Translations under genes and position numbers: made by a program
Origin: Podarcis muralis
Lineage: Eukaryota
Reading direction: 5' to 3'
Length of the DNA stretch: 64,000 nucleotides
Assembly (NCBI RefSeq): GCF_964188315.1
Contig: NC_135655.1
Span: 48,546,001-48,610,000, forward strand
The notes under the pieces: generated by a model
Told to the model about the DNA's origin: nothing
The model's database searches: none
What the model saw: only the letters and a program-made list of their open reading frames with translations
Shown: piece by piece, positions 5,141 to 50,613 of the stretch
How the letters are laid out: the number at the start of each line of letters is the position of its first letter
Position numbering within the stretch: position 1 is the first letter of the stretch

Positions 5141-8100
5141 TTCCAATTAGGACCACAGCAGGGGCAAAGGCTTGCAGTTCACTTCCCCACATGCCACAGT
5201 CCCCATCTGTCTCATGCCCCAAAAAACCATGGACACCACTTCATGATTTGCTTTCAGTTTCAAAGAATCATGGCCTGGCATTCTGTACAAACCAGAGACT
5301 TTAAACAATCTCTGGTTAGTTTCTAAACAAGCCAACATCAAACTATGTGCTATGAAGCTGGCTTCTTTAACTGAACGTAGTTTTCTTCTCTGGTTCGTAG
5401 GCAACACTAAGCCAATATTCTTAGAAACTCAAAAGAAAATGCTAGCAAAGCTCTTCTTGCCATGACAAACAATAGTATATCCAACAAACAGGTTAGATGG
5501 AAACTTGGTCATATCTACAGCCATCTCTCCCCCCGCCCCCCAATTTACCTTGAGCTTGTTCTGTGTCCCTGGCTGGAATTCCCTGAAGAAGTTCAGTGAC
5601 AGCTTCTTCGTTCAGGGCCACAAGATTAGTAAGGTGGTGCAGAAAGTAAAGGGATGTGTGGGACTCCAAACTGTGCAAGTGCTGCAGAAGAACCTTCTCT
5701 GGGATAATATTACTGCAAGAGAAAAGAAGCCTAGTTTCAATGGCAGCAAGATTAGGTTGTAACCTCACATTTTTTCAAGTGAAAGATTCACAACACTCTG
5801 ATTCAGATTTGTCTGCATGAAGTCTTTTATATACCTGTTAAGGGGAATGTAAGTTGAGTGCTTAATGTGCGTAGCAACTGGCCATTGCACACATTCCCCA
5901 GGCCTCATGGACATCAACCATGACGTGCACATCCATCCTCGCTGAACATGTGTATATCAAATGAATTTTATGCTTTCTCCAGCCATTGTGCATAATTCTC
6001 AACAGGTTTCCCCACCACCACCATGCTGTTACCTATTCTGTTGAATACACCATTCAAGAACTTCCACTTGGGCACACAGTCCATCACAGAAGTCTTTTAA
6101 TACTGAGTCATTGTGGAGTCCCTGTTAAAAAGAAATAGGTTTGCATCCATTCAAAGCAAAAAAAAAAAAGCCCTCCAATTCCTCTTCTTAAGAAACTGAC
6201 TGGAATCAAAGCAAGGAAAAACATTGTGCCTCCCCTCACAGGCTTGATGAGGCCTGACGTACCTGAGATTTGTGAAGAGTCCACAGCAGCATTTTTGCCG
6301 ACTCTAAACTGTGACACTGAGTCCACCCTAACAATATCAGGAGGCGACTGAGGTGGCTGAATTCTCGCCGTAGTAAACTGTTGAGGCTGGAGAAGTCTTC
6401 CCTTTTCAATAAAGTTAATGCTGTACCCTAGAGAAAAGAACCACTTGTTTGTTTTAAGACTGTGGAATGCCTGAGTGGGAAGGAGAGTTAAATTTAAAAG
6501 TTAAATTTGCAAATGTTAAAAACAGTTCTAAGAAATTTTTCATGTTCTGTTCCTCTGGCCTGTAGGGAAGCAGCCCCTGGAAAATGTATGGATAAAACGT
6601 GCTATAACTACCCCTCTCTCTTAGTTTCAAATGACTCCTTCAGCATTTTATGTAGACACAAATCATTCTAGCATAATGATGATCCAAAACCTGTACTGGG
6701 CATGGACCAATTCAAAGGGACTACGGCTATGAAGAATGCATGCCTTGTATGTGTTAAGGTTCCATGTTCAATCGAGAGCATCTTGGGTACAAAGACCCTT
6801 TACTGAGATCTAAATTGGGTTGGGCAGTACTTACAGTGGGCGTTCAGCCTGACTCCACAGAAGCAGATGCTAATATCTATATTAAGTACTTCAACTCACT
6901 TAAATCCCATTCACCTTTATACACTATTTACACTCTTGTTTCAGACCTTTTCAAAGGCACCATTTCATAACATATGAAGGGTGTTACCCATAGCAAGCCC
7001 CTTGATTTAGATAGGCAAGCCCACCTTCAAAAATAAACAAATCCAAGAAAGAAATACCTAAATTACACCATGAATCAGAGTAAGCATGTACATGAAGCAC
7101 ACTGAGTTCTAGTTTGCAGTTCACTAACCTAACTATTAAGCCACTAAAACTGCAGCACATTTGCCAAAGATATTGATGATAATGCTGGTAGTGAGTTCAC
7201 AAAGTTCTTTGCCTAACTCAGAAACAATGGCAGCCACATGATCCATTACTCAACTCCTATGTGAATGTCTCATAAGTGATTTACCAGAATTTGTTCCAAA
7301 AAGTGCTTGTTGCTGCTCAGGCAGTAGAAATAGGCAGCTTTCCAAGAAGGAGCGTGTTCACGATCCAAGAACAATGCCATCACTGCCCGCTCTACATCCA
7401 GCTGTTCAGATGTACCTGAAACACCCATAAGTTGGGTTAATTCAAATATAGTTAAGAAACAGAATAGCACCAAGATGGGCAGGCTCTCTATACATTTTAG
7501 CTACAGTCACCAATTATCTCCTGGTTAAACTAAGCCAACAGTTATCATTGCACAGCAAAGAGAACATGCAAATTTAAACAAACCTTTGCCAGGTGACTTC
7601 AGTCCCAGCAGCTTCTCTCTCATCTTCTCAATGAATACGCTGCTGAACAGATTGAGCAAGGCATGGCTGTCTTTCCTAAGCAGACAGCCAAGCAGCCTCT
7701 CTTCTTTCAGCGGGCTCCGCTCAGCCCAACAGGCATCCAGAAGTTCTCGGCAGAGAAGCCGTAGCTCTCCAGTCTGATTCTCCACCTCCAAATTTAACAT
7801 GCCAAGGGCACAATAAATTTCATCCACGGCCTCGCTCCCACCAGATTCCGACAACTCTGGATTTAGCTGGAGGCGCTTCAGATATTTTAGGGACTCCCAG
7901 AGAAAGTCAACGAAGATGTGTTGTGGAGAGCCGCTGTGTGAGAGCGAAGAGCTCTGCTCGGCAGAATCTCTCTGGAGAAGCTCCAAGATGGCTTGCAGCT
8001 TCCGAGGAGCCTGCAACAGCATCTTTTGGAGAGCAGAGAACACCTCGGCACTGAACAGCTGCACGGCTCCATCTCTCGGCTTCCTATTTGGCCCATGCCT

Positions 8101-11100
8101 GTTTCCAAAAGCTTCATATAGTTCCTGGGGAAATAGCTGGATTAACAGAAGATTCTTTCCACAAATACAACTGAGAGACATAAAGAGGTAAGCAGATATA
8201 TAAAATATGGAGGAACTGTCAACAGCATTGGCCCAGTTTACACTGGTGGTCTAAGAGAGCCCCAAATATAGTTAAACATCTGCAGCTGGACAGCCCCATT
8301 TCAGTTCTATCTGCATACTGCAGCCACCTCCTACCTGCTTTCTCATCATCCATGGTACAAGGATTCTTCATGGAGCACCAGAGGAGAAATGATGTTGTTG
8401 GGTCCCTGAGACTTCCTTGCTCCTCTCTGGTGCTACAAGAAGTATCCCCTAAGTGGCAGAGAATGCATGAGCTGATGGTGATAGAACAGAGAGAAGACTG
8501 GAATTAGGTTCTCTAGATCAGTGTTTCCCAACCGGTGTTCCGCGGCACACTGGTGTGCCGTGAGACCTTGCCTGGTGTGCCGTGGGAGGGAGGCGGGAGA
8601 GGCGGGGCGGCGGCGGCATCTCCTGCTGGATGCAAATCCAAACATGGCGGGCGCCTCCCTCGCTCCTTTGTAGGCGGACCATCGAGAGAGAAAGAAAAGG
8701 AGGCGAAAGAGCGAGAGAAGGCACCTGCGCGGAAAGAGGAGCGAGCAGTGCGCCTGCGCGCCGCGGCGCCCGAGATCGCTTCTCCCCACCGCCCCTTGCT
8801 TCAAAAGAGGTCCGGGGACAGCGGGAAGCGCAGCGCTTCTTCCCCGCTGCCCCCGGACCTCTTTTGAAGCAAGGGGCTGCGGGGAGATCGCTTCTCCCGG
8901 TGCTCCGAAGCGGGGCGGGGGGCGGGAACAAGAGACTTGCGGAACGAATTAATTTCGTCTTGCGAGGCACCACTGTACTTTTTATATAGTCAATATAGGC
9001 ACAGAGTTAAATTTTTTAACATTTTCTAATGGTGGTGTGCCTCGAGATTTTTTTCATGAAAGAAGTGTGCCTTTGCCCAAAAAAGGTTGGGAAACACTGC
9101 TCTAGATGACTGTAGAACCAATAGCTGCTACAGCGAAGCAGAGATGTCTGGCCACAGTGAGGATCTTTTTAATTCTCCTGTGTGAACTGGGCCATTGTCT
9201 GCTATCTAGGCCAAAGAACAAAAACTGCAAACACTATTAATGCTCATAGCTATTGAAAAGAAGTCAGTAAGAAGATGCAAAATTGACAGAAACAAGAGGA
9301 GAAATAAATGATGGGATGGTGATGCTGTCTAGCAATTAGAGGGCCAAAGATTCCCCACCCCTGCAGTGGAGAAACTCCCTTTCTCCCCATGCTGCTCCTG
9401 CTGATAAAGGTGAATTATCGGGTTATTATAACCCCCACTCCCAATCAGAGACACTCTATCCCACTTGTCACACTCTGGTTAGATTTCCTTCATTTTTGCC
9501 AGGAAATAGCTTCTTTGCAAGAAAACTTATGAACATGACTGTTAAACAAGTAAAGGGCAGAATGAGCATCAAGCATTTCATTATCAAAATATTTTCACAT
9601 GTGCTAGCCTTTCTTGTAAATTTATTCTACACCTAAAGAGTAGGCCAGGGAGCACTTTAAAATCAAAGCAATAGTTATCAGTTTTAAATCATGAAGTGAA
9701 GGTTTCAGAAGGCCATATCAAAGGGAAGCTAAACCAGCTGCATCTTGTACAGAAAGCTGCATGATTTTCTCTTCTTCTTTCAGTCCTATTTAAGTGGTTT
9801 CTCACCACAGCCATTATGTAGCTGGTTACAGATGTCTGAGTCACATGAGTTTCTGACTGCATTTTGTTAAATGATCCTATTTTGTACACATGATCCTAGA
9901 GCACCTTTCTGTTCCACAAACATTCACTTTCTTTAATGAAGGTAATATAGGATGCAATAATATCAAAAATAAACTGGTGACCTCTCAAAACAAGTAGAAC
10001 TCATAAACCGTGTTCCTGAAAAAAATTAAATCAATTGAACCATTTGGTATTTGATCTCAGGTTGACGATATCCAGTCCAGAACCGAAAGCAAAGCACTTA
10101 CAGAAAAAAACTGAGAAGCCTATGAGTTTGACACTAAGACTCAGAACTTTTCCTATTACATAGACCTTTGGGACTAGAAGACAGAGCTATGCAGATCCAC
10201 GAGCAGTCTGAACAATACTTCATTATGGACCTTAAAACTGAACAACTTTTCCAGAATTGACATGGGCCTAACAATTTTACTACACAAAGGCAGGCAGTTT
10301 CCCAACTGTTGTTTATGAGTTATGTTGGGAGGTCCAGAATCCAACATCTAAGACATATTAGGTTAAAAACAAACAACCATCCATCAACCTTCACAAGAGA
10401 GGTGACAAAGTGATAATAAGATAAAATCGGAACATAGGAATATATTTTATACCAAGTCAGACCACTGGGCCATCAAGCTTGGTACAACCCACACAGACTC
10501 CAGAGTTTCAAGCAGGATTCTTTCCCAACCCTTTCTAGAGCTGCCAGCATTTCAACATGGGGCCTTTTGCATGAAAAGCATGTGCTCTCCCACTCAGCTT
10601 GGCCCTTCCCCAAATTAATGCATCCAAAGTATGACTCTTCCCCTTGAAGGGATCAGTGACATTCCCAATAATCAGTCATCTTCAGAAGGCTGGAGCTGAC
10701 TGGCAATAAACTTAAGCATAAGGGGGAAGCCTCACTGGCAAACATCCACAGAGGTGACAATCAAAACACTCAAGAAAATGAGGTAACATAGGTTATATTT
10801 CTTTAACAAGCCACACAAAGTTCACTTAAATATGCATGGATTCGGATCAACAACTGAAGTGGTGCCGGTCATCTGAATCACAGCTAGCTAACTCCTGGAT
10901 CACCCCACATTTCATATGAATTCCAGGAGTTGGAATTATCTCAGGGCTGTACTGCTCAGCTGAATTCACTGTGCATACACGAGCTTTGCACACATAAGAG
11001 CAACATTAAATGTAACACCTGTTGAACCAATTTCACCCTCAAGAAGCAATCACACCTTGAGAACAGCATGTGAGACATCCTTTTCTAGTTCTTCTAGGAG

Positions 11101-13339
11101 AAGCAAGAACTCAGTTTCTCTCTGGAGAGCTTCTGGAACTGTTTTCTGGAATGATTGGAGGAGAGAGAGAAAAGAAATTGGAGTGATATGTATTAGAATA
11201 GGTATGCAAATAAAATACCGTGCTTTCCCATGTATAACCCCCCCCCCTCCCGTGTATAACACAACCCCTATTTTGGGGGACTCAAATTTATGAAAATGGG
11301 GGAAGACGACCCCCGTTTTTAACATTATTTTAGAGTAAAAAAACCTAGTCTTATACACAGAAAAGTATGGTATATCTAGCGAGAGCTTCTTGGTAGACAT
11401 TTTAGATGTTTTAAAGCTTTTAGGAGCTGGGGAGAGATTGCAACTTATTTCCCAGTCTACTTTGATACGTCCTGCTCAAATAGACTAATTTCAAATAGAC
11501 AGGCATTCAGCCAACAACTTTTACTTGCCAATACTTCTAAACCAAATATTTGGTTCAATTAGTTTTTAAAAATGACAGGTACAATCTAAGGAAACAATTT
11601 GTGGGAAGCTTGCAGAGAGCTGGAGGGTGGTGCTTTGGGGGGGGGGGGCATTGCCAAATCTAAAAGAATTTTTTTGCCCCACTGATTCAGTAAGACTGCC
11701 AACTTTCTTACTGAGTCAACTCCTATGACTATACCAGCTGCTTAGCACACAGAAACGAAGCAGAAGATTTTCTTATCACTTTATCCCCATGTCAGAATCT
11801 ATATCTGTGTAAGTTCTGCATGTCAGTCTGCCTTTCAATGCACAAGGGCAGGAACATCAAAACCTAGAACTGCCACTGGTGTTTTGCAAGAATTGAAAAG
11901 AAAGCATCATTATATGCATCATTTTGCTATTTGAACAGAGCTAGCTATTTTGGATTGTGGCCTATCCATTCAGAATATCAACAGGACTTGCACTATCAAA
12001 CTAATTGAAGAAGAGCATAATGTTACAGTCATAGCCAGGCATAGGCAAACTCAGCCCTCCAGATGTTTTGAGACTACAGTTCCCATCATCCCTGACCACT
12101 GGTCCTGTTAGCTAGGGATCATGGGAGTCATAGTCCCAAAACAGCTGGAGGGCCGAGTTTGCCTATGCCTGGTCATAGCCAAAGCCTTCTTTAATAGCAT
12201 TCTGATTATTATTTTTTGTAATTACTAAAACAGCAGCAATTATCAAACTTCATTGGGTGCTACAAAATTTCTCAAATTAGAAGTATTTTCTTATCTGGAA
12301 TGGAACAGATTTTTTTTACCTGCTCCCATGCGAGCCACGTCTGCAAAACAAGGAGCCAAAACCAAGCAAGTTTTTGAGGACTGTGTTTCGATCCACACCT
12401 ACAAGGAGACATCCCCAAATTAGTCATTTTTCATACTAAATTCATTTATCTAGAAATCTCAGTAACTTTTGAACTGCTTTGAACTGCAGCCCTAGCAAGA
12501 GCAGCTCATAACCCCCCAAAGCTCTACCACAATCAAATCCATTCTTGAACAAAGGAAATTCAAAGGGAGACTGTAAGATGAACGCAGTAAATGTCAGTAT
12601 ATCAAGAGGTTCAGTACTATTGCTTGTCTATGGAATTGCCACAATCATTTGTCATCACATTACATGTGGTAACTGACTTACAAATGTCAGGATACCTGTG
12701 TTTTCAAACATTGTTTTTTCTGAAGCGTCCCTGCTATGTAATTCTTACCATCTTCACATTTCTGCATTCCACTTCCTTCTTTCCTCAAAGTTCACAATCA
12801 CTCTTCCCCTCTGCAAATATCTATGTTCCTGCTATTCAGGATAACACTTCATGTATCCAGTGGTGAACTGGAGTTGACAGAAGTCGATATCATAATAAAT
12901 TTGTTAATCAATAACCTTTATTATTTGTGTTGCAAAAGATTAACACTGCTGCCCTTTTGAAATTAATAAGGAACACACTCAAAACATACTTTAAGGCTGC
13001 ATTCACCTACCTGGGAATAAGCCTCACCGAAAATAATGGGACTTTCTTTGGAGCATCTATGTACAGGACTACACTGTAATATTTTAAAGCTTGCAACTTT
13101 TTCACACACTTTCAACTGTTAGTTACCAAAAGTCAATGTAGTGCTCACCTTAGATGAGAAGGGCAGACTATTAGAGCATGAAGGATCCTTTCCACTTTTT
13201 CACAGCCATCTTCCTGCCACCGGTGTAACTGAGGAATGCAGGCCTGTGCAAGTTCCCAGTCTTCCCTCTTCACACAATCACAAAAAAACCAGAAGAGCCG
13301 TTCCAGGGATGCAGATTCCTCCTTACCAAATGGATGCAT
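763..13339 (-). CDS. ZFYVE26: Zinc finger FYVE domain-containing protein 26 (spastizin/SPG15), 5' part, 11 coding exons; gene continues beyond the left edge
   Basis: Exons on minus: 13339-13149 (MHPFGKEE...), 12398-12320, 11145-11056, 8124-7584, 7415-7285, 6427-6263, 6121-6033, 5712-5549, 4727-4515, 2593-1934, 855-763. All have AG/GT boundaries and continuous phase. Peptides match human spastizin as recalled (WELAQAC, AYFYCLSSNKHFLEQIL, FCAMKYAIYALCVN, LSEAQWRHK). Exon 855-763 is the least certain (right phase and Arg-rich, but low similarity). Confidence 0.95.
1051..1317. mobile_element. hAT-type MITE (1135-~1317) with an inverted copy of its left end at 1051-1103
   Basis: Left terminus CAGGGGTAGTCAACC at 1135; degenerate right terminus GATTGACAACCCG near 1305-1317; 1051-1103 is the exact reverse complement of 1131-1183. 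Confidence 0.65.
3206..3390 (-). mobile_element. tRNA-derived squamate SINE
   Basis: Minus strand reads GCTGTAGCTTAGTGGTAAAGCAC...GGTTCAATCCC (A and B box-like head), then the body CCCTGGAGAGCAGCTGCCAGTCA...CTGACTTGGTATAAGGC shared with the copy at 19258. Confidence 0.8.
4021..4148. mobile_element. Short hAT-type MITE
   Basis: TIRs CAGTGATGGCCAAACTTGGCCC / GGGCCAAGTTTGGCCACCACTG; perfect 8-bp TSD CCCTACAC at 4013-4020 and 4149-4156. Confidence 0.9.
5095..5138. repeat. (CA)n microsatellite
   Basis: Direct reading. Confidence 0.95.
8519..9099. mobile_element. hAT-type non-autonomous element with a GC-rich interior containing one mariner-MITE terminus
   Basis: TIRs CAGTGTTTCCCAACC / GGTTGGGAAACACTG; perfect 8-bp TSD CTCTAGAT at 8511-8518 and 9100-9107; 8930-8975 is the reverse complement of the left end of the MITE at 46676. 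Confidence 0.9.
10428..10610 (-). mobile_element. Degenerate tRNA-derived SINE
   Basis: Shares the TTATACCAAGTCAGACCA tail and tRNA-like head remnants with the copies at 3206 and 19258. Confidence 0.55.
11216..11372. mobile_element. Degenerate Tc1/mariner-type MITE
   Basis: Imperfect TIRs TACCGTGCTTTCCCATGTATAA / TTATACACAGAAAAGTATGGTA with TA ends. Confidence 0.6.
12036..12171. mobile_element. Short hAT-type MITE (same family as 4021-4148)
   Basis: TIRs CAGGCATAGGCAAACTC / GAGTTTGCCTATGCCTG; perfect 8-bp TSD GTCATAGC. Degenerate relatives occur near 17700-17825, 20725-20860, 22480-22640, 29130-29260, 49670-49920, 59895-59970 and 61400-61530. Confidence 0.9.
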
Positions 13340-16305: not shown

Positions 16306-19300
16306 ATGACGGAAAATGACAGGTGCACAACTGTAAGTATTGAAAAACCTACTTTCTACTTTCTTGCAAGCCTATTTATTTGTGTAAGTATGTAAAGAGG
16401 AAGAGGCGAATGAGTTTTTATTTAACTTATTCATTTTAATGTTACATCTCTTAGAATCCTGAAAAAAAATATCAGATATGGATTTGCCTGCCAGTGCTAT
16501 TCCTGTAAATGTCTTTCTTTGGCTGCAGCATCCACATTGCTCAGACAGAGTGCTATTAAATTCTTCTGATGCACTGAAATCACAAGCAGAAAAAGAGGGC
16601 TCAGAGAGTGGGAGGCCAGACAAACTGAACCAGTCTGTTCCCCTCTGCGAGTATAGCAGCATACATTTCCCCCAATTACCATATTGTAAATAAGCCAAGC
16701 GATTCTCTACCCATTTTAAGTGACTATGTCAGTGAAAGGTATCAGTCAAGGCTGCGGTTCCTGCCAACCATGAAATTATTAGTTGTGAGATAACATGATT
16801 GTTTTAGATGTTTGAAACTGTTTTAAGTCCGTTTTTATTTTTCGTTTAAAAAAAACCACTTGCCGCCTTAGCAAGAAGGACAGGATATAAATTTAATAAT
16901 AATAAATTGCCACGGAATGCAGTTAGACTTACTTCTGAGTAAATCCATTGAGAACCAGGCTGCACAAGAAAAGCTACTGCAAAGTACTTCTACGAATGGC
17001 ATTTTAAGATTAAGATTCTGCAGAAATAACTGGTTAAATTGAAAATGTTTTGCAACTGCGAGGCTTTAGCATAACCAATGACGGTCATGAAAACTTTTTA
17101 AAAATGCATATCAAGTAACCACACCCATCCTTGTGGATGGCAGGGCCAGGAATCAATCTAGATTGAAAGCAGCATGCTAAAGACAAGCATGAACAATTCC
17201 GGACTGAGAAAACACTATATTTTTGTGCTACAAATGGCTTGGTGTTTGTGCAGGCATTGTGGTGCAGTGCAGAATCAATCTGCAAGGAGCTTTTATGTTT
17301 GGAATGAAGCACTTTTCAGGAGCAAATAGTAGATCTAGATTGTTTGTGTACTATGTAGAGAAAAACAAGCACTCAGTCTCCTTTGAATCTAGAATAAAAT
17401 GTCATGTGCACAGCTTAAGAGTCATCCAGTACAGTACATTTTTGTACTGGCAGTTCATTATTGCTCTGGGAGGTCTTTGGACACACATTTCAAACATTCC
17501 AGATTACATTCCATTCTGTGATCAGTGCTTTTTCATTGTCTAGCGAGTATTCATGCAATCCATTCACTCCATCTCTTCAAAGGACTGGAGGGAAAGAGGG
17601 AAAGAGTTCGAAGTTAGGCCTGAATACGAGATTAGTGGTTTTGTCCTCGGAGTATTCAAGAAGGTTTCAGTGAAGGATTGCTATGCCTGTAGTGAGCAAG
17701 GGATGTGGCACCTTTGACCCTCCAGATGTTGTTGGACTCAAGAGCTCCCATCAGCTGCAGCCAACATAGCCAATGGTCATTTTAATACATCAACATCTGG
17801 AGGGCCACAGGTGCATTATCCCTGCTGAGTAGCCATCTCCCTTAAACAGGATTTGGCAGTGGGTGTAGGGTGGGAGAAGATTGTAATGTTTCAAAAACTA
17901 GCAAAGTATTTACAACCAGAGACCATGCTTTAGCATATAAATAAAAAACAATAGTTCTGAAATAAGAGGCATATTGTTATGTGCTACCCCAATCTCTAAG
18001 TGGTGAGAAATTCCAGGAGTTCCAGTGCTTACCTAGGGTTTGGCTTCCTTGAAATGAAAGTCAGTGGAGACGACACTTTCTTTAGGATCAGGGGTAGCAT
18101 TTCCCATTTCATCGCTTGTGTCCTCCCCTGCAGTTTTATCCTCACAAAAGCCCTTTGAGGTAGCTAAGGAAGAGAGAGATGGGTCACCTAGTGAGCTTCA
18201 TAGCTTAGGATTTGACTCCGGGGCTGTGTATACACCATACATTTGAAGCACTTTACCTCTCACAGAACCACAATTTCGAGCACCCTTAATAAACTACAGT
18301 TCCTAGATTCTTTGGGGGGAAGTCATGTGCTTTAAATATATGTTGTGTGTACACAGCCACAGGTCTCCATTTCCAGTCTGACATTGTAAGCATTGTATTA
18401 CACTGACCGTTCACTACACATTTATTAAGTCTAGAGCAGGGGTCAGCAACCTTTTTCAGCTGTGGGCCGGTCCACTATCCCTCAGACCATGTGGTGGGCC
18501 AGACTATATTTTGAAAGAAAATATGAATGAATTCCTATGCCCCACAAATAACCCAGAGATGCATTTTAAATAAAAGGACACATTCTACTCATGTAAAAAC
18601 ACCAGGCAGGCCCCACAAATAACCCAGAGATGTGTTTTAAATAAAAGGACACATTCTACTCATGTAAAAACACGCTGATTCCCAGACCGTCCGTGGGCCG
18701 AATTGAGAAGGCGATTGGGCTGCATCCGGTCCCCGGGCCTTAGTTTGCCTACCCCTGGTCTAGAGTAACCCAAGTGTGAAATGAGGTTATTCAACCTTTT
18801 CGGCCTTGAGGGTACATTTGGAACTGTTGGAGGTACCATAAATATCCATTTCATGGAAGAAAAACAGGTGATGCTCACCCACCCCTATAACATGCAAAAC
18901 ACCTAGTCCTCTCCGCAAACTCCCCCAAATAAAACCGAGACCAAAAAAAGCAGGCAATCTTTCGAAAAGTCAGCTCCCCAACCAACCAAAAGCCCAAAAA
19001 ACTACTTTAAAAAATTGAGAGGGGTCAGGGCCTTGACAAGTGCCAAGAGGGCTGTCTGAAAATGATGTAGTGCCCACATTGTGGGCCCCAGGTGTAAAGA
19101 AATGCTTTCATGAGGCAGCGCAATCCTCAGCAAGACCTACGGTCCAAGGTATCACTCTTGTGAACAGCTATCTGGGTGTAACCCTCAGTGAACTCCAGTT
19201 AAAAGGTTTGAGCTTCACACCCATTTTCCTTTCTCCTGCAGGGTGGCTCTTTGGATGAAAGGCTGTAGCTCAGTTGTAGGTAGAGCACTTGCTCTGCATG

Positions 19301-21779
19301 CATAAGGTCCCAGGGTCAAACCCCAGCATCTCCAGAGAGGACTGGGAATGTCCGCTGTCTGAAACCCTGGAGAGCCACTGCCAGTCACATTATTCCAGTA
19401 CCGAGCAAGATGGACCAATAGTCTGACTTGGCATAAGACAGATTTCTATCTTATTTTTAATGCAGAGCTTAAAAGACAGGTACAACTAGGAAGAAAACTC
19501 CTGTGTACGTATAGTATTAGTAATAGATAAATATGCAGCTTTGTATTTTATTGTACAGATGTCATTTTCAAACGCATATTCAGAATTATTGTTTCCCCCA
19601 TTAGGTGGAGAAATACGTCGGTGAGATTAAAGGAGGACTGAGGCCAACCATGAAAATCACTATCATGGGGGTAATATGCCCTGCCCCCAAGAGGCAAGTG
19701 TGTCAGCCGGCATTCTAGCAGCTGCTTCATGGATGTATCTGGCGAAAATTGCTCATAGGTGCAGATCTATTGAGGAATAGCATTAGCTGGGCAAAAAGGG
19801 AGAGATAGTATTGTCAATATGGAGAACATCAGAGGAGCACTGAACATAATTCACTATTTCTGAGCACTGTAGCTCAGCAGAGCATAACTGACCATTCTTA
19901 GCTCACACATCCAGAAACCAGTCCCTTCCAATTCTAATATTCTATGGTTCCATAATTAAGTCTCCTGTGAACCCAAAGTAATCCCAAAGTAATCACTCAA
20001 AAATATGGCTGCCTGCTGGAACTCTGCATGCTTCTTCCAATTCACCTTCGCTGGGGATGGGTAATCCTGCTGACCCATCTCTGCTTCAGTTGTGGCTGGA
20101 GCACTGAATCATCCTGATTCATCACAGAATTGCCTCTACTGTCACCAAGGCTCCCTATTGCCCCTCCGCATGAGCCAGTGCTGTGTGCTTCCATCCTTCC
20201 CATTGGGAGGGCAGGGGAAAGGGGTCGTAATTTTGCTATATTTGTTTGTTTGACTGGATCATTCCAACACTTCTGATGCAAAGATGGAGGAGAAATAGCT
20301 GTTCCCAGAGGAGGCATTCCCAGAATAATGCCCCATGCACAGAGCCAGCCCTACCAGTAGGCAGAAAGCGGGAACCCAACTGTTCCTTCTGTTGCTGTTT
20401 TGTTCTGCCTTGTCCCTCTAATCTGGCCTGCTGCTTTATGTGCAGTGCAAGAAGCTATCCCATCACCCCTGGTGCTGAAGGAAAATTAATCTGCATGTCT
20501 GGTCAGCTGTTTAAAATTTGCTTAAGTAGCCACGCACAATGCATCATCGCCTCATATATCTGTGCTGTTTCTTACAGAGCACTATGATGATGTCACACTA
20601 AAAAGGCAGGCTCTGTGTCATTTCTGATGTATGTTTCTGGACAGCTCTCATAATGCTTTTTCAGCGTCTAGGCCAGTGCAGTTTAGCTACTTTTCTCCAA
20701 TTGCAGCTGGAGGTAAGCATTTAATGCAGGGTTGGAGAACCTGTGGCCCTCCAGAGAAATTGCTGGGCTCTCACCAACCCCAGGCTACATGGCCCATGGT
20801 GAAGGATGGTGGGAGCTGCAGTAACAGCATTTGGAGGGCCACAGGTTTCACATCCTTAGACTAGGCCATACTTACCCTGGAAACAAATATGACATTATAA
20901 TGCCACAGCATGTGATAAATGAGCTCACTATCATGTTAGATTGTTGAATTGTTACTTATCGCATGTTCATTCCTTCAAGTTTTTCAGTGACTTTGCTCTG
21001 TGACCCCATGGATGCCAATCTGGACATTGGGCTGTTGTTTGCAGTCAGCTTTCTTGAGAAATCCATTGTGCGAAATTCACGGATTGCTGGGAAATGGGGT
21101 AAAGAGGAAAAGACCATTCCCTACTTCCCATTTACAACAGGGGAGTCATTTAAGGTAATTTTACTTGCTAGTATGGGAGACAGATATATAGACAGAGATA
21201 TAAACTGCCTAAGACCCTCTGGCCCAGTATTGTCTCCTTTGACTGACAGCAGCTCTCCAAGGCCTCAGGCAGATTTTCTCTTTCAACACTTCTGATCATC
21301 TAACTATAGGTGCTTGGAACTAAAGTTGTAGTCGTGTTTGTAATAAACATGTCCTCTATTTGCTCCATCTGTATTTACAGGATCAAAAGGAAGACCATTT
21401 ATTTATTTATAAAGATATTTCTAGACTGTCAAGTCATACTAAAATATGGTTGCCATTTAAGTACGGTAGATCTTCCAGTGTAATATTTCCAATTGATTTT
21501 CAAAAGCATCTACGCATAATCAAGTCCCATTGAAATCAATAAGCTTGCGACTCATTACTTTGTGGGCGCCCAACTTTATTGGGATTGCTGTCAGTCTCTG
21601 CCCCTGCCACCCATGGATCTCCTTTGTTTTTTCAGATGGAGCTCTTGTGTGAGCATCAGCAGATTCGGGTTTTGCTTGATGGACGTCAGCTCTGCAGTTT
21701 CACTCACCGCGTGCAGCCTATGCAAAGGGTGACAGCTTTACAAATCTCCGGAGACATCAAGCTCACCAAAGTGGCTTGA
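16306..21779 (+). CDS. Galectin-related protein, LGALSL/GRP-like paralogue, single CRD, about 144 aa
   Basis: Exons 16306-16332 (MTENDRCTT, donor GTAAGT; less certain), 19605-19693 (VEKYVGEIKGGLRPTMKITIMGV...; GC donor), 20980-21154 (FSVTLLCD...NSRIAGKWGKEEKTIPYFPF), 21636-21779 (MELLCEHQQIRVLLDG...ISGDIKLTKVA*). Phases join 0/2/0. Resembles recalled human LGALSL (GHIKGGMRPG, IPYFPF, EILCEH, INGDLQITKLG). Symbol left blank because orthology is unresolved. Confidence 0.88.
18222..18358. mobile_element. Small MITE with GGCTGTGTA termini (family unassigned)
   Basis: Imperfect TIRs GGCTGTGTATACACCATACATTT / AAATATATGTTGTGTGTACACAGCC; related fragment near 25850-25990. Confidence 0.55.
18437..18757. 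mobile_element. hAT-type MITE with internal tandem duplication
   Basis: TIRs CAGGGGTCAGCAACC / GTTTGCCTACCCCTG; perfect 8-bp TSD GTCTAGAG; a ~63-bp unit (CCCACAAATAACCCAGAGATG...CATGTAAAAACAC) occurs twice at ~18540 and ~18612. Confidence 0.9.
19258..19450 (+). mobile_element. tRNA-derived squamate SINE
   Basis: Head GGCTGTAGCTCAGT...GGGTCAAACCCC, body CTGAAACCCTGGAGAGCCACTGCCAGTCA, tail GATGGACCAATAGTCTGACTTGGCATAAG. Confidence 0.8.
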
Positions 21780-24223: not shown

Positions 24224-27200
24224 CTATGTTAGCTGTTTGATGGCTTCAATCCAGCTTGCCCTCTCTGCCTTGGAACTGGCCTGTATAAAGTAGTGAATGT
24301 CATTCTTTGTTATGATTTTGAAGAGGTTGCCCTGCACATTCCCTTTCACTCCTGCAACAAAAAGGAAAAGGGAGGGGAATGTTAGCAAGGCGCAGGGACA
24401 ACACAATTGCTGCAATAACAGCAAAATCTCACATGGGAGAGAGTTTGAGAACTCAACACAGTTTTGCTTTTGTTGAGAAGAGAGTGTACCACTGCATTGA
24501 TACGAATACAGGCTTGGATCTGGATCCAACTAACCCGGTGTGCTAACAGAAGCTAGTGCAAGGGCTCCCGCTAACACAGTGGGTTTCTTCCCCCTCTCGT
24601 CTGCCTGAACACTCACACACCTTGCCAAATCTACTTTGGAGGGTTGGGAGAATCCCTAGAACAGTAGAAGGGGAAAGGGTGTACCATTTCATCTGAAAAG
24701 CAGAAATGCTTGCACTGATCAGAAGAGTGATGTGATGTTGAATTCTTCCCTTTATCTTTACATGACCTCCCATCCACACAAGTGGCATGAAAGGCCAAAA
24801 AGGCAACACTTATTTTCTCCATGCTATACTGTCCTTAATCTGGCGATATGGCTGCTTGAGCCAGCTATTTATAATCAAGAGAGCTACAGCCAGTCCTATT
24901 GTCACAGTTTTTCAAGGTGCCCTAATTGGAGCTCAGACTGGAGAAGGGGCAAACAGGGCCTGCCCCCCTGGCCTTTATGACAATTTTCTAAACTACTGTT
25001 TTTGGAAACCTACAAGGGAGGTGTGATTTGGCTAAAATAGTAGGGTGTGGAATTCATGGATTTCATTATGCCCACCACCATTACCATTTAATCTCCCATA
25101 GCTGGGAGCCCAGGCCCTAAGATCTGAAATGGCTTCAGCTTTCCCAGTGTAAGCAGCTGATTCACACTAAACTTTATTCATAAATAAGAAAGGAACATGT
25201 GAAGAGCCCCACAACCGAAGGAACTGCTATGTTCATACTTGCCTGTTGGGACTCCATTATCTTCCAATGCTGAGACAAGGCAACCACGGAGAGAGAATCC
25301 CCCAACTGGTCGGTTATCTTCCTATGGTGGGTGGAAAGAGTCCAAAGGGAGAAGTAAGGAATATGAATTATATGTTCTATGCAACACATTTTACTTTGGC
25401 AAGACATGCAGTAGCTGGCCACATCAGCATAACATGAATCTTGTCCCAGCCTGTTCCTCTTTGGGATAGGCCTTTGGAGGTTCTAGGTGTTAATTATGTA
25501 AAGAGGTAGTATCTTAATTTTAAAAAATTATACATGTCTTCCCCAAAGTGTTTTAATAACAGATGAATTCTAAAGACAAGGGGGCAATTATAGGAACCTA
25601 GGAAGCTGTCTTATACTGCATCAGACAGTTTGTCCATCTATTATTTATTATTATTAGTTGATTCCATTTATGAATTGCCTTAATAAAAACATTATCTAGG
25701 CAACATACACAGCAAGATCAAAAAACCAACACATATTATATAATTCAATGAAATCATAAATAAATGGATAAAATCAACCCAGCAGTGTCATAAATCCAAT
25801 CTAGATCAAAAACAGGCTGTGAATTATATCTTTGAAGCAGATTTCCCCCCTCAAATAAATTCTGGGCACCATAGTTTCTTAAGGGTTGCTGGAAATTATA
25901 AATCTGTGAGGAGTAAACTACGGTGCCCAAAATTCTTTGAAGGAAATAATGTGCTCTGAATGAGCTTTAAATATATGGTGTGCGCACAGCCACAGACCAA
26001 ACTCCAGCAACCAACCTAATTAGCATAAGAACAAAACACCACACCATGTGCGCCATCTTGCCCCTACAATTGAGGGAACTGGGGCACGACATGCACACAC
26101 ACCCCAGGATGCCACATTTGTTGAGCACAAGAGGTTTAGTTTCAGCCTCACATGATTCTAACTTAAGCACACAAAAATTCAAATCTATTTTACCAAAAAG
26201 TTACACACAAGACATGAGATAGTTTTTGTATTGGGAGTCCATCATCTCACCTTTGTGGGGTCATAATAGTGTAGGAAAGCAGGGTCAGCCCTCAGGACAA
26301 AGCGCCTCACCTTCCAGTTTTTCCTCTTGTGTCCCTAAAAGTTGAAAAGATTAATAGATCCATTTCACCTTCCATTTCTCAGTTTGTCCTTCTGAAATGG
26401 CCTGTAGATCTGCATACACTGAGACATTTCTCGTTATCTGTTTTACCACATTTTATCTTCACAATAGCCCTGTGAAACAGGTTTAGCCGAGAGGAATAAT
26501 TGTCATAGCCAAGTAAGTTAGACAAAGAAACATTGTCAGAGGCAGAATTGAAGTCATTGTGCATTTTGCTAAGTCACTAAATCAACTTACTTTCCTAGCT
26601 CAAACAATTAAAGGCAGAAGTGTCTGAATAGTAACTGTAGGCTAGATTCGACTGCTTGTCTTTGAGAACCAAATTTGCTTCAGAATCAGAATATAATAAT
26701 GTACACAGTGGGACCGCTGTTTCATAGAAGAGACCATCTGGTTTTAGTGCAAATTATTTTGGAATTCTGCTGAGAATGACAATTCAAAAGGATCACTTGG
26801 CGCACAAATCCTTGTGGGGGATTCTGACCTCACTATTCACCAAGGCACTTCACAATGGTCTCTTAATTCCATTTTAACTTTCAGTGCACTGAAGTGTGTG
26901 GGGGAACAACCTGATTTACAAAACTATTTGAAATCAGTATAGATAGTTCTGTGTCCGGGGGGGGGGGGGGATCAAAGGCTTTCCTGGTCAGAAAATTGTT
27001 TTTGCCTATTATGATTTGAAAAGCATTTCTTATGTCACACAGAAAGCTAAACCATACATTCAGAAATATCACAAGGTCCAGTGCTTTTTGCGTTGTACCA
27101 CATCAGGTGAAAGATTGTGTTAATCAATTATTCTCCACCTCAAACATTATTTGCTAAAGGAAAGCTAGCATATCTGCAAGAAGGATTCCAGTTAGTGTAC

Positions 27201-30200
27201 TAAAGGTATATATATATTTCCTACTGAAGTATTAGGCATAGAACACCACATTTTTTTCTCTATACATTTGGTCCTATGTGCACTCTTTTGCAACACTGTT
27301 CATGTGATTGTGATCTTAGGGTTGTATTCAACAGTATGTCAGCAGACTTCACTTCTCCTCTCTCTCCTCTCCTCATGTGCCCCCCTCAGATCTGCTCCAG
27401 ATCTTCCCCCAATGCACTGGAGCAGTTTTCGAGCATGGGCATGAGCAGAAGAGGAGAGAGAAGTCCGTTGGACAAGTGGAAGTTTATTGTACAAGTAGAT
27501 ACAACCCATATTGTTTAATTTTATTACCCAACTTTCTTCTTTAAAAAGAGCTTAAGAAGACACTAAATACAGCATTGCCCAGTCTCCCATTCTCCACTTG
27601 CCAACATGATTCAGAAGTCATGGTCACCTGTTTTATTAAAAATCCTTGTTTTAAAATGGTGCCACTCAGTTCAATAATGTTAAGATGAATATTTTCTTTG
27701 GAGGTGGTTCTCTTCTTATAGTTTTCCGCCTGCAATAAAAATTAAAGATATTGGGGAAATTGGGGGTAGCGGTAGCAAAACAAGTACAAAATACACAAGT
27801 GTTCCTTTCCTCCTTTAACATGGAACTTTCATTCCTCAGTCACAGAAACTTCCATCTTCAAAGCAGTTTTTTTGCCAGACACGATAAACAGGAGGGATGG
27901 TCTCAGCACCCAGTATCCTCAGGCAGTTGCCAGGACCCCAGTGCTCTTAAAGGGCCCACCACTACTGATGTCACCCCTAGGCAGGTGGCTCACAACCACC
28001 CATTGCAGGTCTCAGCACTGCTGCCACCACTCCCAGCAAATAATGCTGCTGGAGAGGCCCAGAGGGCCTTTTGCTGCCCCCTCACTAATAAACAGATACA
28101 GAAGTGCATAAATTAAGTTTCATTATGGCAGGTACAATGAGCTGTACCCATATTGCATCCAGATAAACACCAGACTGTTCCTGTTGCACATCCACACCCA
28201 ACCCAAAGTCCAACTGCTGCATTAGTCAGATATAACTTGGAAAGCATTAGAAAGATTTTGCCCAAGTTATCTTTTGGCCTGATTTGCATTTGCCTGATTT
28301 GCATTTGCTGCAGATCTTTCCTATCAGTCTCCCCAATGCATATGCACACTGTGCCCCCCATTTTTTAGTGTCCTGATATGCAGAAAGGAGACTTCCAGAA
28401 ATCTCATCACTTACAAATGTGTACAGAGCTGTAGAGTCATCCAAAAACTGCTCCGTCAAATCACCATTCCTCATGGCTTCAACACTGCGGGCTCCCATAG
28501 GCTTAATGAAATTTTCATCCACCAGCACAGAGGCCAGGGTGACAGCCTCTAGACGGGAGGCTGCAAATCTATTGGAAATCAGCCAGTCAACCAGCACAGA
28601 GCCTGAAATAATAAAGGCAGCTGTTAAGGTGAGCAAAAACAGCATGCAGCCAGTCAATTCCCAAGGAAGGTAGAGGTTTTCAGTACTCATCCTCTAATAG
28701 AGAAATGAGTCTTAAATTGTAATCTAACCTGACTGAAGAGCAGACATTTGCATGCACATTTTCATAAACTTGGCAGGTTGCACTGTCTTTCTGGATAACC
28801 TTATTCTCATTCTAGGCCAGCCCAAGACATTTTGCAGGCAAAGGGGACCCTTTCAATTCTACAATTCTGTGAAGCACACACACACACAATTCATAAATGA
28901 TACCTAAAATTAGAGGTGTTTGGGCTCCAGACTGTATTTTTCCCTTACATTTTAATCGTGCCTTTCCTTTAAGGAGCATAGTACAGTGTAGACGGGTCTC
29001 CCTCTTTCATTTCATCCTCATCACAGCCCAGGGAGGTAGATTAGGCTGAGACGCCATGATTGGCTCAAAGTCACCCAGTGAACTTCACGGCCAAGTAGGG
29101 AATTGAACCCAAATCCCCTGGTCCTAAAGCAATCAGGAGTAGCCAATGTAGTGCCCTCCAACTGCAGTTGGACCAACTGCAATCACCTCTAGACATTTGT
29201 TTAGCTGGCTGGGGCTGATGGAAGTTGTAGTTCAACACCATATGAAGGGCACCATGTTAGCTACCCACCCCACACTTCAAATACTAGGTTTGGAAGCCAC
29301 TCACACTAATGTTTAAGTATCTCCATCTAATCACCAGCATGTGAGGTCCGGCTGTAGCTATTAGTGGGAGAGAAATCACTGAAGATGTGCTCTTATTGTT
29401 CATGTCCCAGGGCTGTGCCCTAATAATGAAAACAAGGTTCTGAAGCTGCACCATGGTGGGCCCTGGGAGAAAACAACATTCCTTTGCATCAGATTATATT
29501 GAAGTACTAGGAGGCTAGTAACATGAGGTTTGCCTACCTGTAAAACTTTCTTTATATGTGCTGCCTTGTTCTGTGTTGGGTGTGAGCTTAATTCCACTGC
29601 TGCTGTCATGCATTTTGTCCACAATGTGACTGGAAAAAACCCAGCAAAAAGGTTAATGTTTAAGAAAACAGAGAATCCGGTTTTGTGAGGGGACTCAAAT
29701 CCCTCGGTCTCAATTCATACAGCCAATAAAGAGCACAGTTTCGATCGAAAGTACCTCAGGCATGAATGGAAGGCAATTCCAGTTACACACAGGAGAGTAC
29801 CATTGATTTCTGCCCCTTCAGTCCTCTATCCTTGATTCAATCAAGTAGTGGCGTAGTGGTGGGGGGCATGGGGCAATTGCCCTGGATGCACAATCGGGGG
29901 TGGCAGGCGAACCAGGCTGGGGAATGCGGGTGATGATATTCACCCTCCACATGTCCCTCCCCCACCTGACATGTGAGTGCCTGCCTGGTGGCAGTGGCAA
30001 GGGCCAGATGAGCGCACTGTACACCCGCCCTGGGTCCTGGCAAACAGCGCTATGCCCTTGCTTGAATGCATCTCATTCTATGTTGCTGTCAAGTAAGCTC
30101 AGTTTTGGGACTTAATTATATTCCAGTGGGGTCCCTCTTTAGATGGTAAGGCGTATTACTTCATTTTAAAATGCGGTAAGCCAGCTTTGCTGCGTTTGGG

Positions 30201-33200
30201 CGTCCTCCTGGTCATTCTATGAAGTGGGGCTCTGAGCTTCTGCCCCAAAGTCCTGCCCTGATGGCACCACTGTCCAGAGAGTCCCCTGAGCCTCAGGTCT
30301 GTAAAAACATAAGAGCAGCCCTGCAGAATCACACAAAAGGTCAACCTAGTCCAGCATTTATTCTCCTGCAGTAGCCAAGCAGATGACCATGGGGAGTCCA
30401 CAAACTTCTCATCCTTAATAAACCATGAGTGGTTAGCCCAAACAAACCTTGGGTACAACTTATGGTTTGTCTGAATTGAGACAAACCACAATCTTGGATC
30501 CAGACATAATGTTAAACTAAACCATGGCTTAGCTTCAGGTAGCACAGCAGCAGAACTGGGGGAGAAGTGAAGCAGCCATGACATTTGCTATGAGCATGTT
30601 CACATTTAGCCACAGTCTGGCTTAGTGTTATATACAAACTGGGCTACACACACCCCACAAATTGCAGGAAAGCAGATGGAGGAATTATTTAACACTTACT
30701 TCAGGCTGATATTTGAGGGCAGTTTGAAGGAATTTTTCATGCGGTGAAGTTGCTGGACTTGCACTGGGTTGCCAGCATGAATAGCACCAGTTATATCCAA
30801 CGCCCAGGCATCACGCTCTTCTCGAGAGCAGAAATCGAGGAAATACTCTGTGTTTGTTTTTGTCTTCAGTTTAATAACCAACTACAAATAAACCCACAAG
30901 AAACAACAATACATTATTTGCTAGAAATTATTAGTGCATCTCTCATAAATTCTGAAATTGAGAGACCTTGAACAGCTTAACTTTCTGGTCATAAACAGAT
31001 GTGATCAAACATTTTCACAGGTAAAACTACATGATAAATCTACCTGTGTTTTATTTATCACATCTATCTATATCAAGTGTTTCAAGGTTTCAAGTGTGCT
31101 GCTTTGAAGTGTGAGTACTGTAATATGTTCAATTTTTAAAAATACAGTATGATAAAGTTGTATATCTATCACTTGCCTTCCCTAGCTAAACTAGAGAAAA
31201 TGTGTAAGATTTGTGATAGGATCTCACAACATTTTTCCAGAGCTTAGAAGTAGCCAGTTTCAACACTGCTCTTCACCCCTAGCTAAAGGGAGAATGTCCT
31301 AGCTAATATGACCCACACATACATGGTACCAGCACTGCCCCTTCTAATATGTTCCATTTTCTAGAGCCAAAACAGCAACAGTAATTTATACCAAATGGGA
31401 AGAGAATTGGACATACCGGCCTGTTATACTCCAAACATGGACAAGTCATTGTGCAGCCATCCAAAATAATCCTGCCCTTTGGAGAAGACTCTTTCTTTCC
31501 TCCCACAACTTTATAATAGAGCAGTCTGTCCTGGAGAAGAACAAACCATCTTGCTTTCCAGTTGTGGACAACATGTCCCTGCAAACAAAAAGTGTCAATC
31601 TTAGGTGCATCTTATAAACAACATTTATTACCTGCTTTTGTGTTGCATACTCATGAACTTCTTACTCACTGCACTCAGTTGATAATTTATATAGCCTCTA
31701 ATGTGCTCTCATCTGGTAGGACTTTAAACCGAGTTCTTACCTTCTTTCCACAAATCCAAGGTTTCCCCAGATGTATTTTAGTGATTCCACAAGTGAGCTT
31801 TTTGCAACGATAGCACATTTCCCCAGGCAGTCATTATAGGTATATGATCACAATAACCTGGTGCCAGTACTGAGTAGCCTAGTATCCCCGGGGAAAAGCA
31901 CTAACTACTATTATACAATGGGAAAGATGCTGATTCGCCACAACTAATGAAATAGATTTGTCTCACTCAGATCCAAATTCAGTTTTACAGTCACTAGGCA
32001 TGAGTGGTTCTCAAAAGGTCCTACCCTACCATGCAGCAAGGTAGGGCAGTAGATTTTTATTTATTTTTTGCAATAGATTTTTTTTGGGGGGGGGGGGGCG
32101 GAATCCAATACTTTTTGAAGTGGTGGGCCCTAGCATGGGGGAGGCATCATTTGGTACTCTGCCTCAGGCAGCGACATGTTTTTGGTGTTGCTCAACTTTG
32201 ACTTTTACAACAGAGAGGATTCAAACCATACATAGCATGGGGTGGGGTTCTAGCTTTAAAAACCCAGATTTCAGACAATGCTCTCAAGTCCCATACAGCA
32301 GTTCTCATCTGTTTTTAGTTTACCCAACATATTGCTATCTCAAAAACATGACAGGACATTTCAGGTGTTGGGAAGCACAATGGACAGAGATGTCCCGCTT
32401 GCAGGTTTCCCATAGACATCTGTCAGGCCACTGTGAAAGCGAGATGTTGGACTAGCTGGGCCTTTGGCCTGATCCAGCAGTTCTTTGCTTTTGTTCTTCA
32501 CTCTACCCCCAAGCAGACGGCTCTGTCAGCCAACTGCAGTACTACCTAGTCTCTGTTCTGTTTTCCCTGTTTTCCCCTAGTGGGGCTAATGGAATCCTCT
32601 GGGAGCAACTTAGATCAGGGAAAGAGCATGGTGGGGAGGAGAAAGAATAAATGCCCAATCAAACTAGGAACTTTGTGGCATCTCTGAAGTAGAGAAAAGA
32701 AATTCATTCATTAATCTCCTGCATCATGTGCAATTTGGCCCTTAGACATGAGCATAGAAAAAGCACATTGGACTGGATAAATTGTTAGAAATTAGGGCCC
32801 TTCTGAAGATCCGATAATGACAGATTAAGAGAGGTGGTATATTTCAGATATTGCAAAAGGATAATTTGAATAACTCAGGCTACATTTTGAACCTGGAGCC
32901 CTCCTAACATAAATTGAGTGTGCACAATAAAAGGCAAAAGATCAAGATTGAGCAGACAGGTAGAGCAAGAAGAACTAGATTGTTGCTCTGACCTGTTGCA
33001 CCCTAGGTCAGAAGGGCAGGATATAGGGAGAGCTGCTTGAAAAGCAAGACAAGAATAAAAGATGACAGCAGCGGTGGATCTTGAGGAGATCTGCATGCAT
33101 GCAAGACAGGACCTGACAGTGAATAAGGTGCTGCAGGTCAGAGCAAGAGAGGAATGTTAGCAGAATGTTAGCACAGCACTCTAGAGCAGTACAGTATCTA

Positions 33201-39388: not shown

Positions 39389-50613
<11,225 letters not shown>

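Follow-up and report, generated by a model that had tools for sequence, protein, structure and literature searches.

The closest described relative of the gene analysed here is LGALSL2, also called LGALSLA, which was named by Günther and Galuska in 2023 (PMC10343441). These authors call LGALSL2 an ohnologue, report its loss from mammals, and place it in synteny with zfyve26, plek2, and vti1b (Table 1, PMC10343441). In their model, LGALSL2 goes back to the tandem-repeat member of a double galectin locus, as the counterpart of LGALS8 minus the N-terminal domain, and LGALSL pairs with LGALS3. In the chicken, as Günther et al. (2026) later reported, the gene is active chiefly in testis and epididymis, and the protein stains vesicles rich in carbohydrate; a broad glycan array showed no significant binding, with very weak signals for a few fucosylated glycans (PMC13696195). 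With a name given in 2023 and a chicken study of 2026, LGALSL2 is not new: earlier papers cover the gene and its age, neighbours, mammalian loss, and altered sugar site, and an annotation of the lizard copy exists.

We analysed a window of 64,000 nucleotides from the lizard Podarcis muralis and conclude, with a probability of roughly 0.85, that the gene at positions 16306-21779 is the P. muralis orthologue of LGALSL2 (LGALSLA, "galectin-related protein A"), the nearest relative of which is LGALSL (GRP/HSPC159). What is added here is independent support for the gene, from trees with two clades, estimates of selection, and the conservation of neighbouring genes. In addition, the sequence phylogeny groups LGALSL2 with LGALSL and not with galectin-8, a modest point for galectin specialists; the discovery value is small. 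An initial annotation, made from the raw sequence, had read the gene as a second galectin-related protein gene with a remodelled sugar site, and the results given below support that interpretation as essentially right and its reasoning as sound.

Gene structure, neighbours, and selection

The features of the window that bear on the gene are as follows.

6306..13339, minus strand: 5′ part of ZFYVE26 (FYVE and TPR_ZFYVE26 domains), continuing towards the window start
16306..16332, plus strand: LGALSL2 coding exon 1, 9 codons, with the start ATG and a GT donor
16333..19604, plus strand: LGALSL2 intron 1, with interspersed repeats
18539-18673: 71-base unit in 1.9 copies, within LGALSL2 intron 1
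19605..19693, plus strand: LGALSL2 coding exon 2, 29 codons and 2 bases, followed by a GC donor (AG|gcaagt)
20980..21154, plus strand: LGALSL2 coding exon 3, 1 base and 58 codons, strands S3 to S6 with the remodelled sugar-site columns
21636..21779, plus strand: LGALSL2 coding exon 4, 47 codons and TGA, strands F3, F4, F5, S2, and F1
24224..31779, minus strand: 3′ part of PLEK2 (PH-DEP-PH, 354 aa), continuing beyond; DEP exon at about 28250-28690
43315..43665, minus strand: EIF2S1 exon in an open frame (PF07541, 4.1e-6), the next gene along

The four exons, on the plus strand, are free of stops, as had been read from the sequence at first, and encode a product of 144 residues with a single galectin domain. 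The joined translation equals, residue for residue, the NCBI protein [quoted passage not shown] (P0001, 144 aa), a name close to the one that the initial annotation had guessed, and the stretch 16306-21779 is identical, base for base, to the gene stretch of that record's locus. With the exons searched singly, Pfam PF00337 matches exon 3 (7e-12) and exon 4 (2.9e-10). The N-terminus encoded by exon 1, MTEND or MADND, is conserved from sharks to lizards, and an alignment of exons 2-4 between skate and lizard has no gap. The exon layout is of the C-terminal-domain type and common to the orthologues. GT-AG signals bound introns 1 and 3, and intron 2 splits a Ser codon as AG|T.

Only the two lacertids, Podarcis and Zootoca, have the GC donor in intron 2; in the skink, gecko, alligator, eagle, and skate, the donor is GT. 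Functional introns of the GC-AG type are known, as a minority class. One might take this non-standard donor as a sign that the lizard gene is a decaying or unexpressed relic; however, the same donor occurs in Zootoca, where the frame is intact too, and the frame in Podarcis is likewise whole. Moreover, dN/dS is 0.13-0.24 for all sauropsid pairs and 0.14 between Podarcis and Zootoca, with 5 nonsynonymous and 10 synonymous changes (Fisher p 2.8e-4; the statistics are sums over exons, with the split codon omitted). A neutral ratio, named beforehand as evidence against the initial reading, is thus not what was found. From these sequence comparisons, the lizard gene is under purifying selection, and a relic copy is very improbable.

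The gene lies between PLEK2 on one side, as first noted, and ZFYVE26 on the other, so that two members of the published syntenic trio are present; VTI1B was not identified in the window. Zootoca, Lerista, Eublepharis, and two eagle assemblies share the order ZFYVE26(-)/LGALSL2(+)/PLEK2(-), and in Alligator, PLEK2 is the downstream neighbour, so that neighbours are conserved in six further sauropsid assemblies. No neighbours were seen within 10 kb at the skate LGALSL2 locus or at the P. muralis LGALSL locus.

Orthology and a probable pairing of LGALSL2 with LGALSL

The window protein falls within the LGALSL2 clade, beside Zootoca (support 98/98; 100/98 in a second tree), and the branching of this clade is approximately that of the species tree. 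The protein resembles the LGALSL2 of other species in clade, length (143-144 aa), exon layout, neighbours, absence of the S4 triad, and possession of the Trp, and it is 72-78% identical to the bird orthologues that were fetched, a set without chicken. Orthologues close to 144 aa in length are present in squamates, tuatara, turtles, crocodilians, birds, frogs, salamanders, caecilians, the coelacanth, gar, one teleost, sharks, and rays. Among 101 relatives of the window protein found by word search, there was no mammal, and mammalian LGALSL was found at once. LGALSL2 is kept in every jawed-vertebrate group sampled but mammals. The original proposal of retention in reptiles and loss in humans, therefore, stood as to the absence from mammals, in a comparison set without human sequences, and was too narrow in naming reptiles, since the gene is retained from sharks to birds.

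Could the window gene be a true LGALSL with a shortened tail, the sole gene of this type in the lizard? The NCBI names would allow such a reading, as they are inconsistent within one clade ("A-like", "B", or plain "galectin-related protein"). It is refuted, however, by a separate P. muralis LGALSL of 171 aa (P0373), 39% identical to LGALSL2, which lies on OZ076956.1 of the same assembly, with the window gene on another chromosome, OZ076954.1. This LGALSL falls in the other clade (support 99/96; second tree 100/99), and the claim of a second gene beside LGALSL is borne out.

Since both clades span ray-finned fishes and tetrapods, with cartilaginous fishes also in the LGALSL2 clade, LGALSL and LGALSL2 separated before the radiation of jawed vertebrates, with mammals alone having lost LGALSL2. 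This timing is the one expected of a whole-genome-duplication pair. Regions of human 2p and 14q are paralogous. Going by this paralogy and the published synteny (PMC10343441), the event that separated the two genes would be the genome duplication itself. The ohnologue reading of the initial annotation thus gains support from the early split and from the published status of the gene (PMC10343441).

A different matter is which galectin is the partner of LGALSL2. In the trees, a single clade (100/100), on a stem of 1.08 changes per column, unites LGALSL, LGALSL2, and two cyclostome proteins and leaves out the C-terminal domains of galectin-4, -8, and -9. Placements of the cyclostome proteins are not told apart by the AU test (p 0.48), so that the duplication is compatible with either the first or the second genome duplication. 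A tree constrained to join LGALSL2 with the galectin-8 C-domain is worse by 36.4 log-likelihood units and is rejected (AU p 1.15e-6) in a sampling with a single, long-branched galectin-8 and no galectin-3. A large representative search returned mostly many-domain galectins, with no galectin-3 among the matches.

The published pairing, in which LGALSL2 is the shortened counterpart of LGALS8, LGALSL pairs with LGALS3, and LGALSL2 is thus no direct duplicate of LGALSL, has a positional argument in its favour, as peli1 lies beside LGALSL and peli2 beside LGALS3 (Table 1, PMC10343441). Against it stand the 100/100 clade, the rejected constraint, and the fact that LGALSL and LGALSL2 both lack the S4 triad and are each other's closest in fold, and we regard it as rather unlikely. 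The trees, from which galectin-3 is absent, favour the pairing of LGALSL with LGALSL2 over the published wording. We lean slightly towards the view that LGALSL and LGALSL2 are direct duplicates, the single-domain members of two ancient double-galectin loci. If so, the galectin that corresponds to galectin-8 in shortened form would be galectin-3 instead of LGALSL2, and the pairing of the 2023 model would have to be revised. Since the phylogeny pairs LGALSL2 with LGALSL and not with galectin-8, sugar binding was probably lost once, and the loss would date from before the LGALSL/LGALSL2 split.

LGALSL is the nearest paralogue of LGALSL2, and it also provides the nearest solved fold (5it6 from chicken; 2jj6 and 3b9c from human). 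The two share the lost S4 triad, a single domain, the absence of a signal peptide, and the last two exon breaks, which in P. muralis fall at identical alignment positions. LGALSL differs in its location on another chromosome, in its retention in mammals, and in its N-terminal tail before the domain, which is 38 residues long in the lizard's own LGALSL and 12 in LGALSL2, so that most of the LGALSL tail is missing, as the initial annotation had stated.

Sugar site, fold, and possible function

LGALSL2 is a leaderless protein of 144 residues with one galectin-type β-sandwich. The structure prediction that had been suggested as a check, an AlphaFold2 model, gave a galectin fold with a mean pLDDT of 89.9; among solved structures, the closest to it is that of chicken GRP, 5it6 (TM 0.88/0.94, rmsd 1.2 Å, 39% identity). 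The canonical C-terminal-type domains (the C-domains of galectin-9, -4, and -8, galectin-3, and rat galectin-5) have the same β-sandwich (TM 0.83-0.87) and a short middle exon of the same type, with Val, Asn, Trp, and Glu in common with LGALSL2; identity to them is 28-35%, and LGALSL2 has other residues for the S4 His, Asn, and Arg and Lys for the final Arg.

Set against a canonical domain (…HFNPRF…VRN…WGNEER), the His, Asn, and Arg of strand S4 become Leu58, Ala60, and Ser62 in the lizard protein, Val69, Asn71, Trp78, and Glu81 are retained, and the last Arg is Lys83, just as the initial annotation had it. The lizard protein, therefore, does not have the full classical set of His, Asn, Arg, Val, Asn, Trp, Glu, and Arg. 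In 43 LGALSL2 sequences, the His, Asn, and Arg of the three S4 columns are absent throughout, and these columns differ among lineages (Leu/Gln/Glu, Thr/Ala/Val, and Asn/Ser); the Trp of strand S5 is present in 43 of 43 and Asn71 and Glu81 each in 41 of 43. The retained Trp had been offered as a contrast with LGALSL. This is correct for mammalian LGALSL (ERGEEQ), which has Arg where LGALSL2 has Trp; however, since lizard and chicken LGALSL also have the Trp (GEWGEEQ), it is no mark against reptile LGALSL.

By analogy with the chicken orthologue, the lizard protein is probably not a classical β-galactoside lectin. More likely, it interacts with another protein or with an unusual ligand within cells of the male reproductive tract, because chicken LGALSL2 is found mainly in testis and epididymis. 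Nevertheless, the retained Trp, Asn, and Glu may, to judge from sequence, leave room for a sugar ligand absent from the array. LGALSL2 could then still be a lectin for a glycan other than β-galactosides, held through Trp78, Asn71, and Glu81 on the concave face. The near-invariance of these three residues is consistent with such a role, as are the vesicle staining and the very weak fucosylated-glycan signals of the chicken protein (PMC13696195). On the other hand, the same broad array gave no significant binding (PMC13696195), the galactose-holding S4 residues are missing clade-wide, and their columns vary by lineage, unlike a fixed sugar site. We consider a surviving lectin function rather unlikely, and a protein partner or unusual ligand the likelier object of binding.

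The F-face is, according to a published claim, the conserved face; in a comparison made at the level of strands, with inward and outward residues taken together, conservation was 0.78 for the F-face versus 0.73 for the S-face (p 0.23). Finally, the lizard protein and gene differ from other LGALSL2 only in lacertid details, namely the GC donor of intron 2 and Ser at the former Arg column, where Asn is usual; this Ser is common to other squamates.

Identity of the wall lizard gene

The galectin-related gene of the common wall lizard is LGALSL2; this observation is confirmed, and its interpretation in the initial annotation, as an ohnologue kept in reptiles and lost in humans, is supported. The gene was named LGALSL2 (also LGALSLA) by Günther and Galuska in 2023, who treated it as an ohnologue, syntenic with vti1b, zfyve26 and plek2, that is present in all Gnathostomata but lost in Mammalia (PMC10343441). 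The finding is real and the inference was correct, but the gene is already known. A full-text literature search turned up just two other papers mentioning lgalsla, and no study of reptile LGALSL2.

Coding exons of LGALSL2 in the window
16306-16332, plus strand: exon 1, stop-free translation
19605-19693, plus strand: exon 2, stop-free translation
20980-21154, plus strand: exon 3, stop-free; PF00337 at 7e-12, profile positions 29-85
21636-21779, plus strand: exon 4, stop-free; PF00337 at 2.9e-10, profile positions 86-130

The exons, which were searched singly, bear out the intact four-exon reading frame read earlier from the sequence. Joined in order, their translations equal P0001, the 144-residue NCBI record [quoted passage not shown] reached by a word search with exon 3, so that the gene had indeed been annotated under such a name, as was suspected. 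The locus of this record is identical to the window, base for base, over the gene stretch, and all whole-protein analyses were made on P0001.

That this is a second galectin-related gene holds as well, since LGALSL and the window gene lie on different sequences of one assembly, GCA_964188315.1 (OZ076956.1, 119.95 Mb, and OZ076954.1, 48.56 Mb). LGALSL of P. muralis (P0373, XP_028577711.2, 171 residues) shares 39% identity with LGALSL2 over 133 residues, and the breaks of the last two coding exons coincide in the alignment of the two genes. The galectin domain begins at residue 39 of LGALSL but already at residue 13 of LGALSL2, which accordingly lacks most of the N-terminal tail, as had been noticed.

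Distribution and descent

A word search with P0001 gave 101 relatives, the near-full-length ones of about 144 residues, from squamates, tuatara, turtles, crocodilians, many birds, frogs, salamanders, caecilians, gar, sharks, skates and rays; a representative search added coelacanth and one characiform "galectin-related protein A". None of the 101 is mammalian, in agreement with the proposed loss in humans and the published loss in Mammalia (PMC10343441). A profile search with LGALSL recovered mammalian LGALSL at once.

In a 38-row maximum-likelihood tree, the LGALSL2 clade (support 98/98) roughly tracks species relationships and places the window protein beside Zootoca, and the LGALSL clade (99/96) includes the lizard's other gene. 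Because ray-finned fishes and tetrapods occur in both clades, and cartilaginous fishes also in that of LGALSL2, the split predates the jawed-vertebrate radiation. Databases name the members of the LGALSL2 clade inconsistently, as "A", "A-like", "B", "B-like" or simply "galectin-related protein" (database proteins P0078, P0052, P0061 and P0071); the gar protein is labelled "B", and teleost proteins called "lgalslb" belong to the LGALSL clade.

One modest point goes beyond the papers, namely, which galectins pair with which. The 2023 model proposes the double loci LGALS8 plus LGALSL and LGALSL2 plus LGALS3, with LGALSL2 having lost an N-terminal domain and being the counterpart of galectin-8 (PMC10343441). 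We added the C- and N-terminal domains of galectin-4, -8 and -9 in a 49-row tree, which holds a single, long-branched galectin-8 and no galectin-3. Here LGALSL and LGALSL2 group with two cyclostome proteins in one clade (100/100), whose stem measures 1.08 changes per column, and forcing LGALSL2 to join the C-domain of that one galectin-8 lowers the log-likelihood by 36.4 units (AU p 1.15e-6). Together these results, on sequence grounds, favour the pairing of LGALSL2 with LGALSL, as first suggested, and an early loss of sugar binding that happened once. The cyclostome members, from lamprey (P0155, 210 aa) and hagfish (P0226, 152 aa), are GRP-like single-domain galectins, and the AU test assigns them to neither the LGALSL nor the LGALSL2 side (p 0.48).

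Sugar site, selection and possible function

Exon 3 was aligned to the canonical galectin domain (...HFNPRF...VRN...WGNEER). The His, Asn and Arg of strand S4 are replaced by Leu58, Ala60 and Ser62, Val69, Asn71, Trp78 and Glu81 are retained, and the last Arg is Lys83, exactly as initially described. In 43 LGALSL2 orthologues, the three S4 columns never hold His, Asn or Arg; Trp occurs in all 43, and Asn71 and Glu81 in 41 each. The galactose-holding triad was lost before sharks and bony vertebrates parted.

The retained Trp had been held to distinguish the gene from human LGALSL. The motif given for it, ERGEEQ, is right for mammals, but chicken and lizard LGALSL read EWGEEQ, and the Trp therefore sets LGALSL2 apart from mammalian LGALSL only. 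Published work likewise places the Trp-to-Arg change of LGALSL from monotremes onward and finds Trp in all LGALSL2 proteins (PMC13696195).

LGALSL2 has a single domain and no leader, and purifying selection on it has been steady. With dN/dS, the measure proposed in the initial annotation, taken from Nei-Gojobori counts per exon (split codon excluded), values were 0.13-0.24 in all sauropsid pairs; Podarcis and Zootoca differ by 5 changes at 310 nonsynonymous sites and 10 at 92 synonymous sites (Fisher p 2.8e-4). Exons 2-4 align from skate to lizard with zero gaps.

In an AlphaFold2 model from a 49-row alignment (mean pLDDT 89.9), the strands follow the order of a galectin domain. Among solved structures, the model matches best chicken GRP, that is, LGALSL (5it6; TM 0.88/0.94, rmsd 1.2 A), and human GRP; galectin-5, -9C, -4C and -7 come next. 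Conservation is reported to be concentrated on the convex F-face (PMC13696195); in our crude, strand-level comparison, F-face and S-face scored 0.78 and 0.73 (p 0.23).

[quoted passage not shown] 2026; PMC13696195). By analogy, lizard LGALSL2 would not be a classical lectin and would more probably attach to vesicles in cells of the male reproductive tract through a protein partner or an unusual ligand.

Neighbouring genes and introns

Genes flanking LGALSL2 in the window
6306-13339, minus strand: ZFYVE26, upstream of LGALSL2
24224-31779, minus strand: PLEK2 (PH-DEP-PH), downstream of LGALSL2; DEP exon confirmed by Pfam
43315-43665, minus strand: EIF2S1 exon, Pfam-confirmed

The order in the window is ZFYVE26(-), LGALSL2(+), PLEK2(-), EIF2S1(-), and the galectin thus lies beside PLEK2. 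ZFYVE26(-), galectin(+) and PLEK2(-) recur in this order in Zootoca, Lerista, Eublepharis and two eagle assemblies, and in Alligator, too, PLEK2 follows downstream. In human, several genes (TMEM229B to RDH12) lie between PLEK2 and ZFYVE26, and PLEK2 and EIF2S1 are on opposite strands. Given these differences in order and strand, LGALSL2 may have been lost in mammals at a breakpoint of rearrangement.

The splice signals of introns 1 and 3 are GT-AG. Intron 2, which splits a Ser codon, has a GC donor (AG|gcaagt), found in both Podarcis and Zootoca (window 19692-19699; locus L002, 13976-13985); the corresponding donor is GT in skink, gecko, alligator, eagle and skate. The pattern therefore suggests a GT-to-GC change specific to lacertids, in a gene that purifying selection maintains. 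Intron 1 also carries a 71-base unit repeated 1.9 times (18539-18673, 96% match), enclosed by an element whose ends (~18440 and ~18765) resemble, by eye, short inverted repeats that the repeat tool did not report. Palindromic repeat copies at 17699-17823 (intron 1) and 20726-20755 (intron 2) have in common ...CCCTCCAGATGTTG / CATCTGGAGGGCCACAGGTG...
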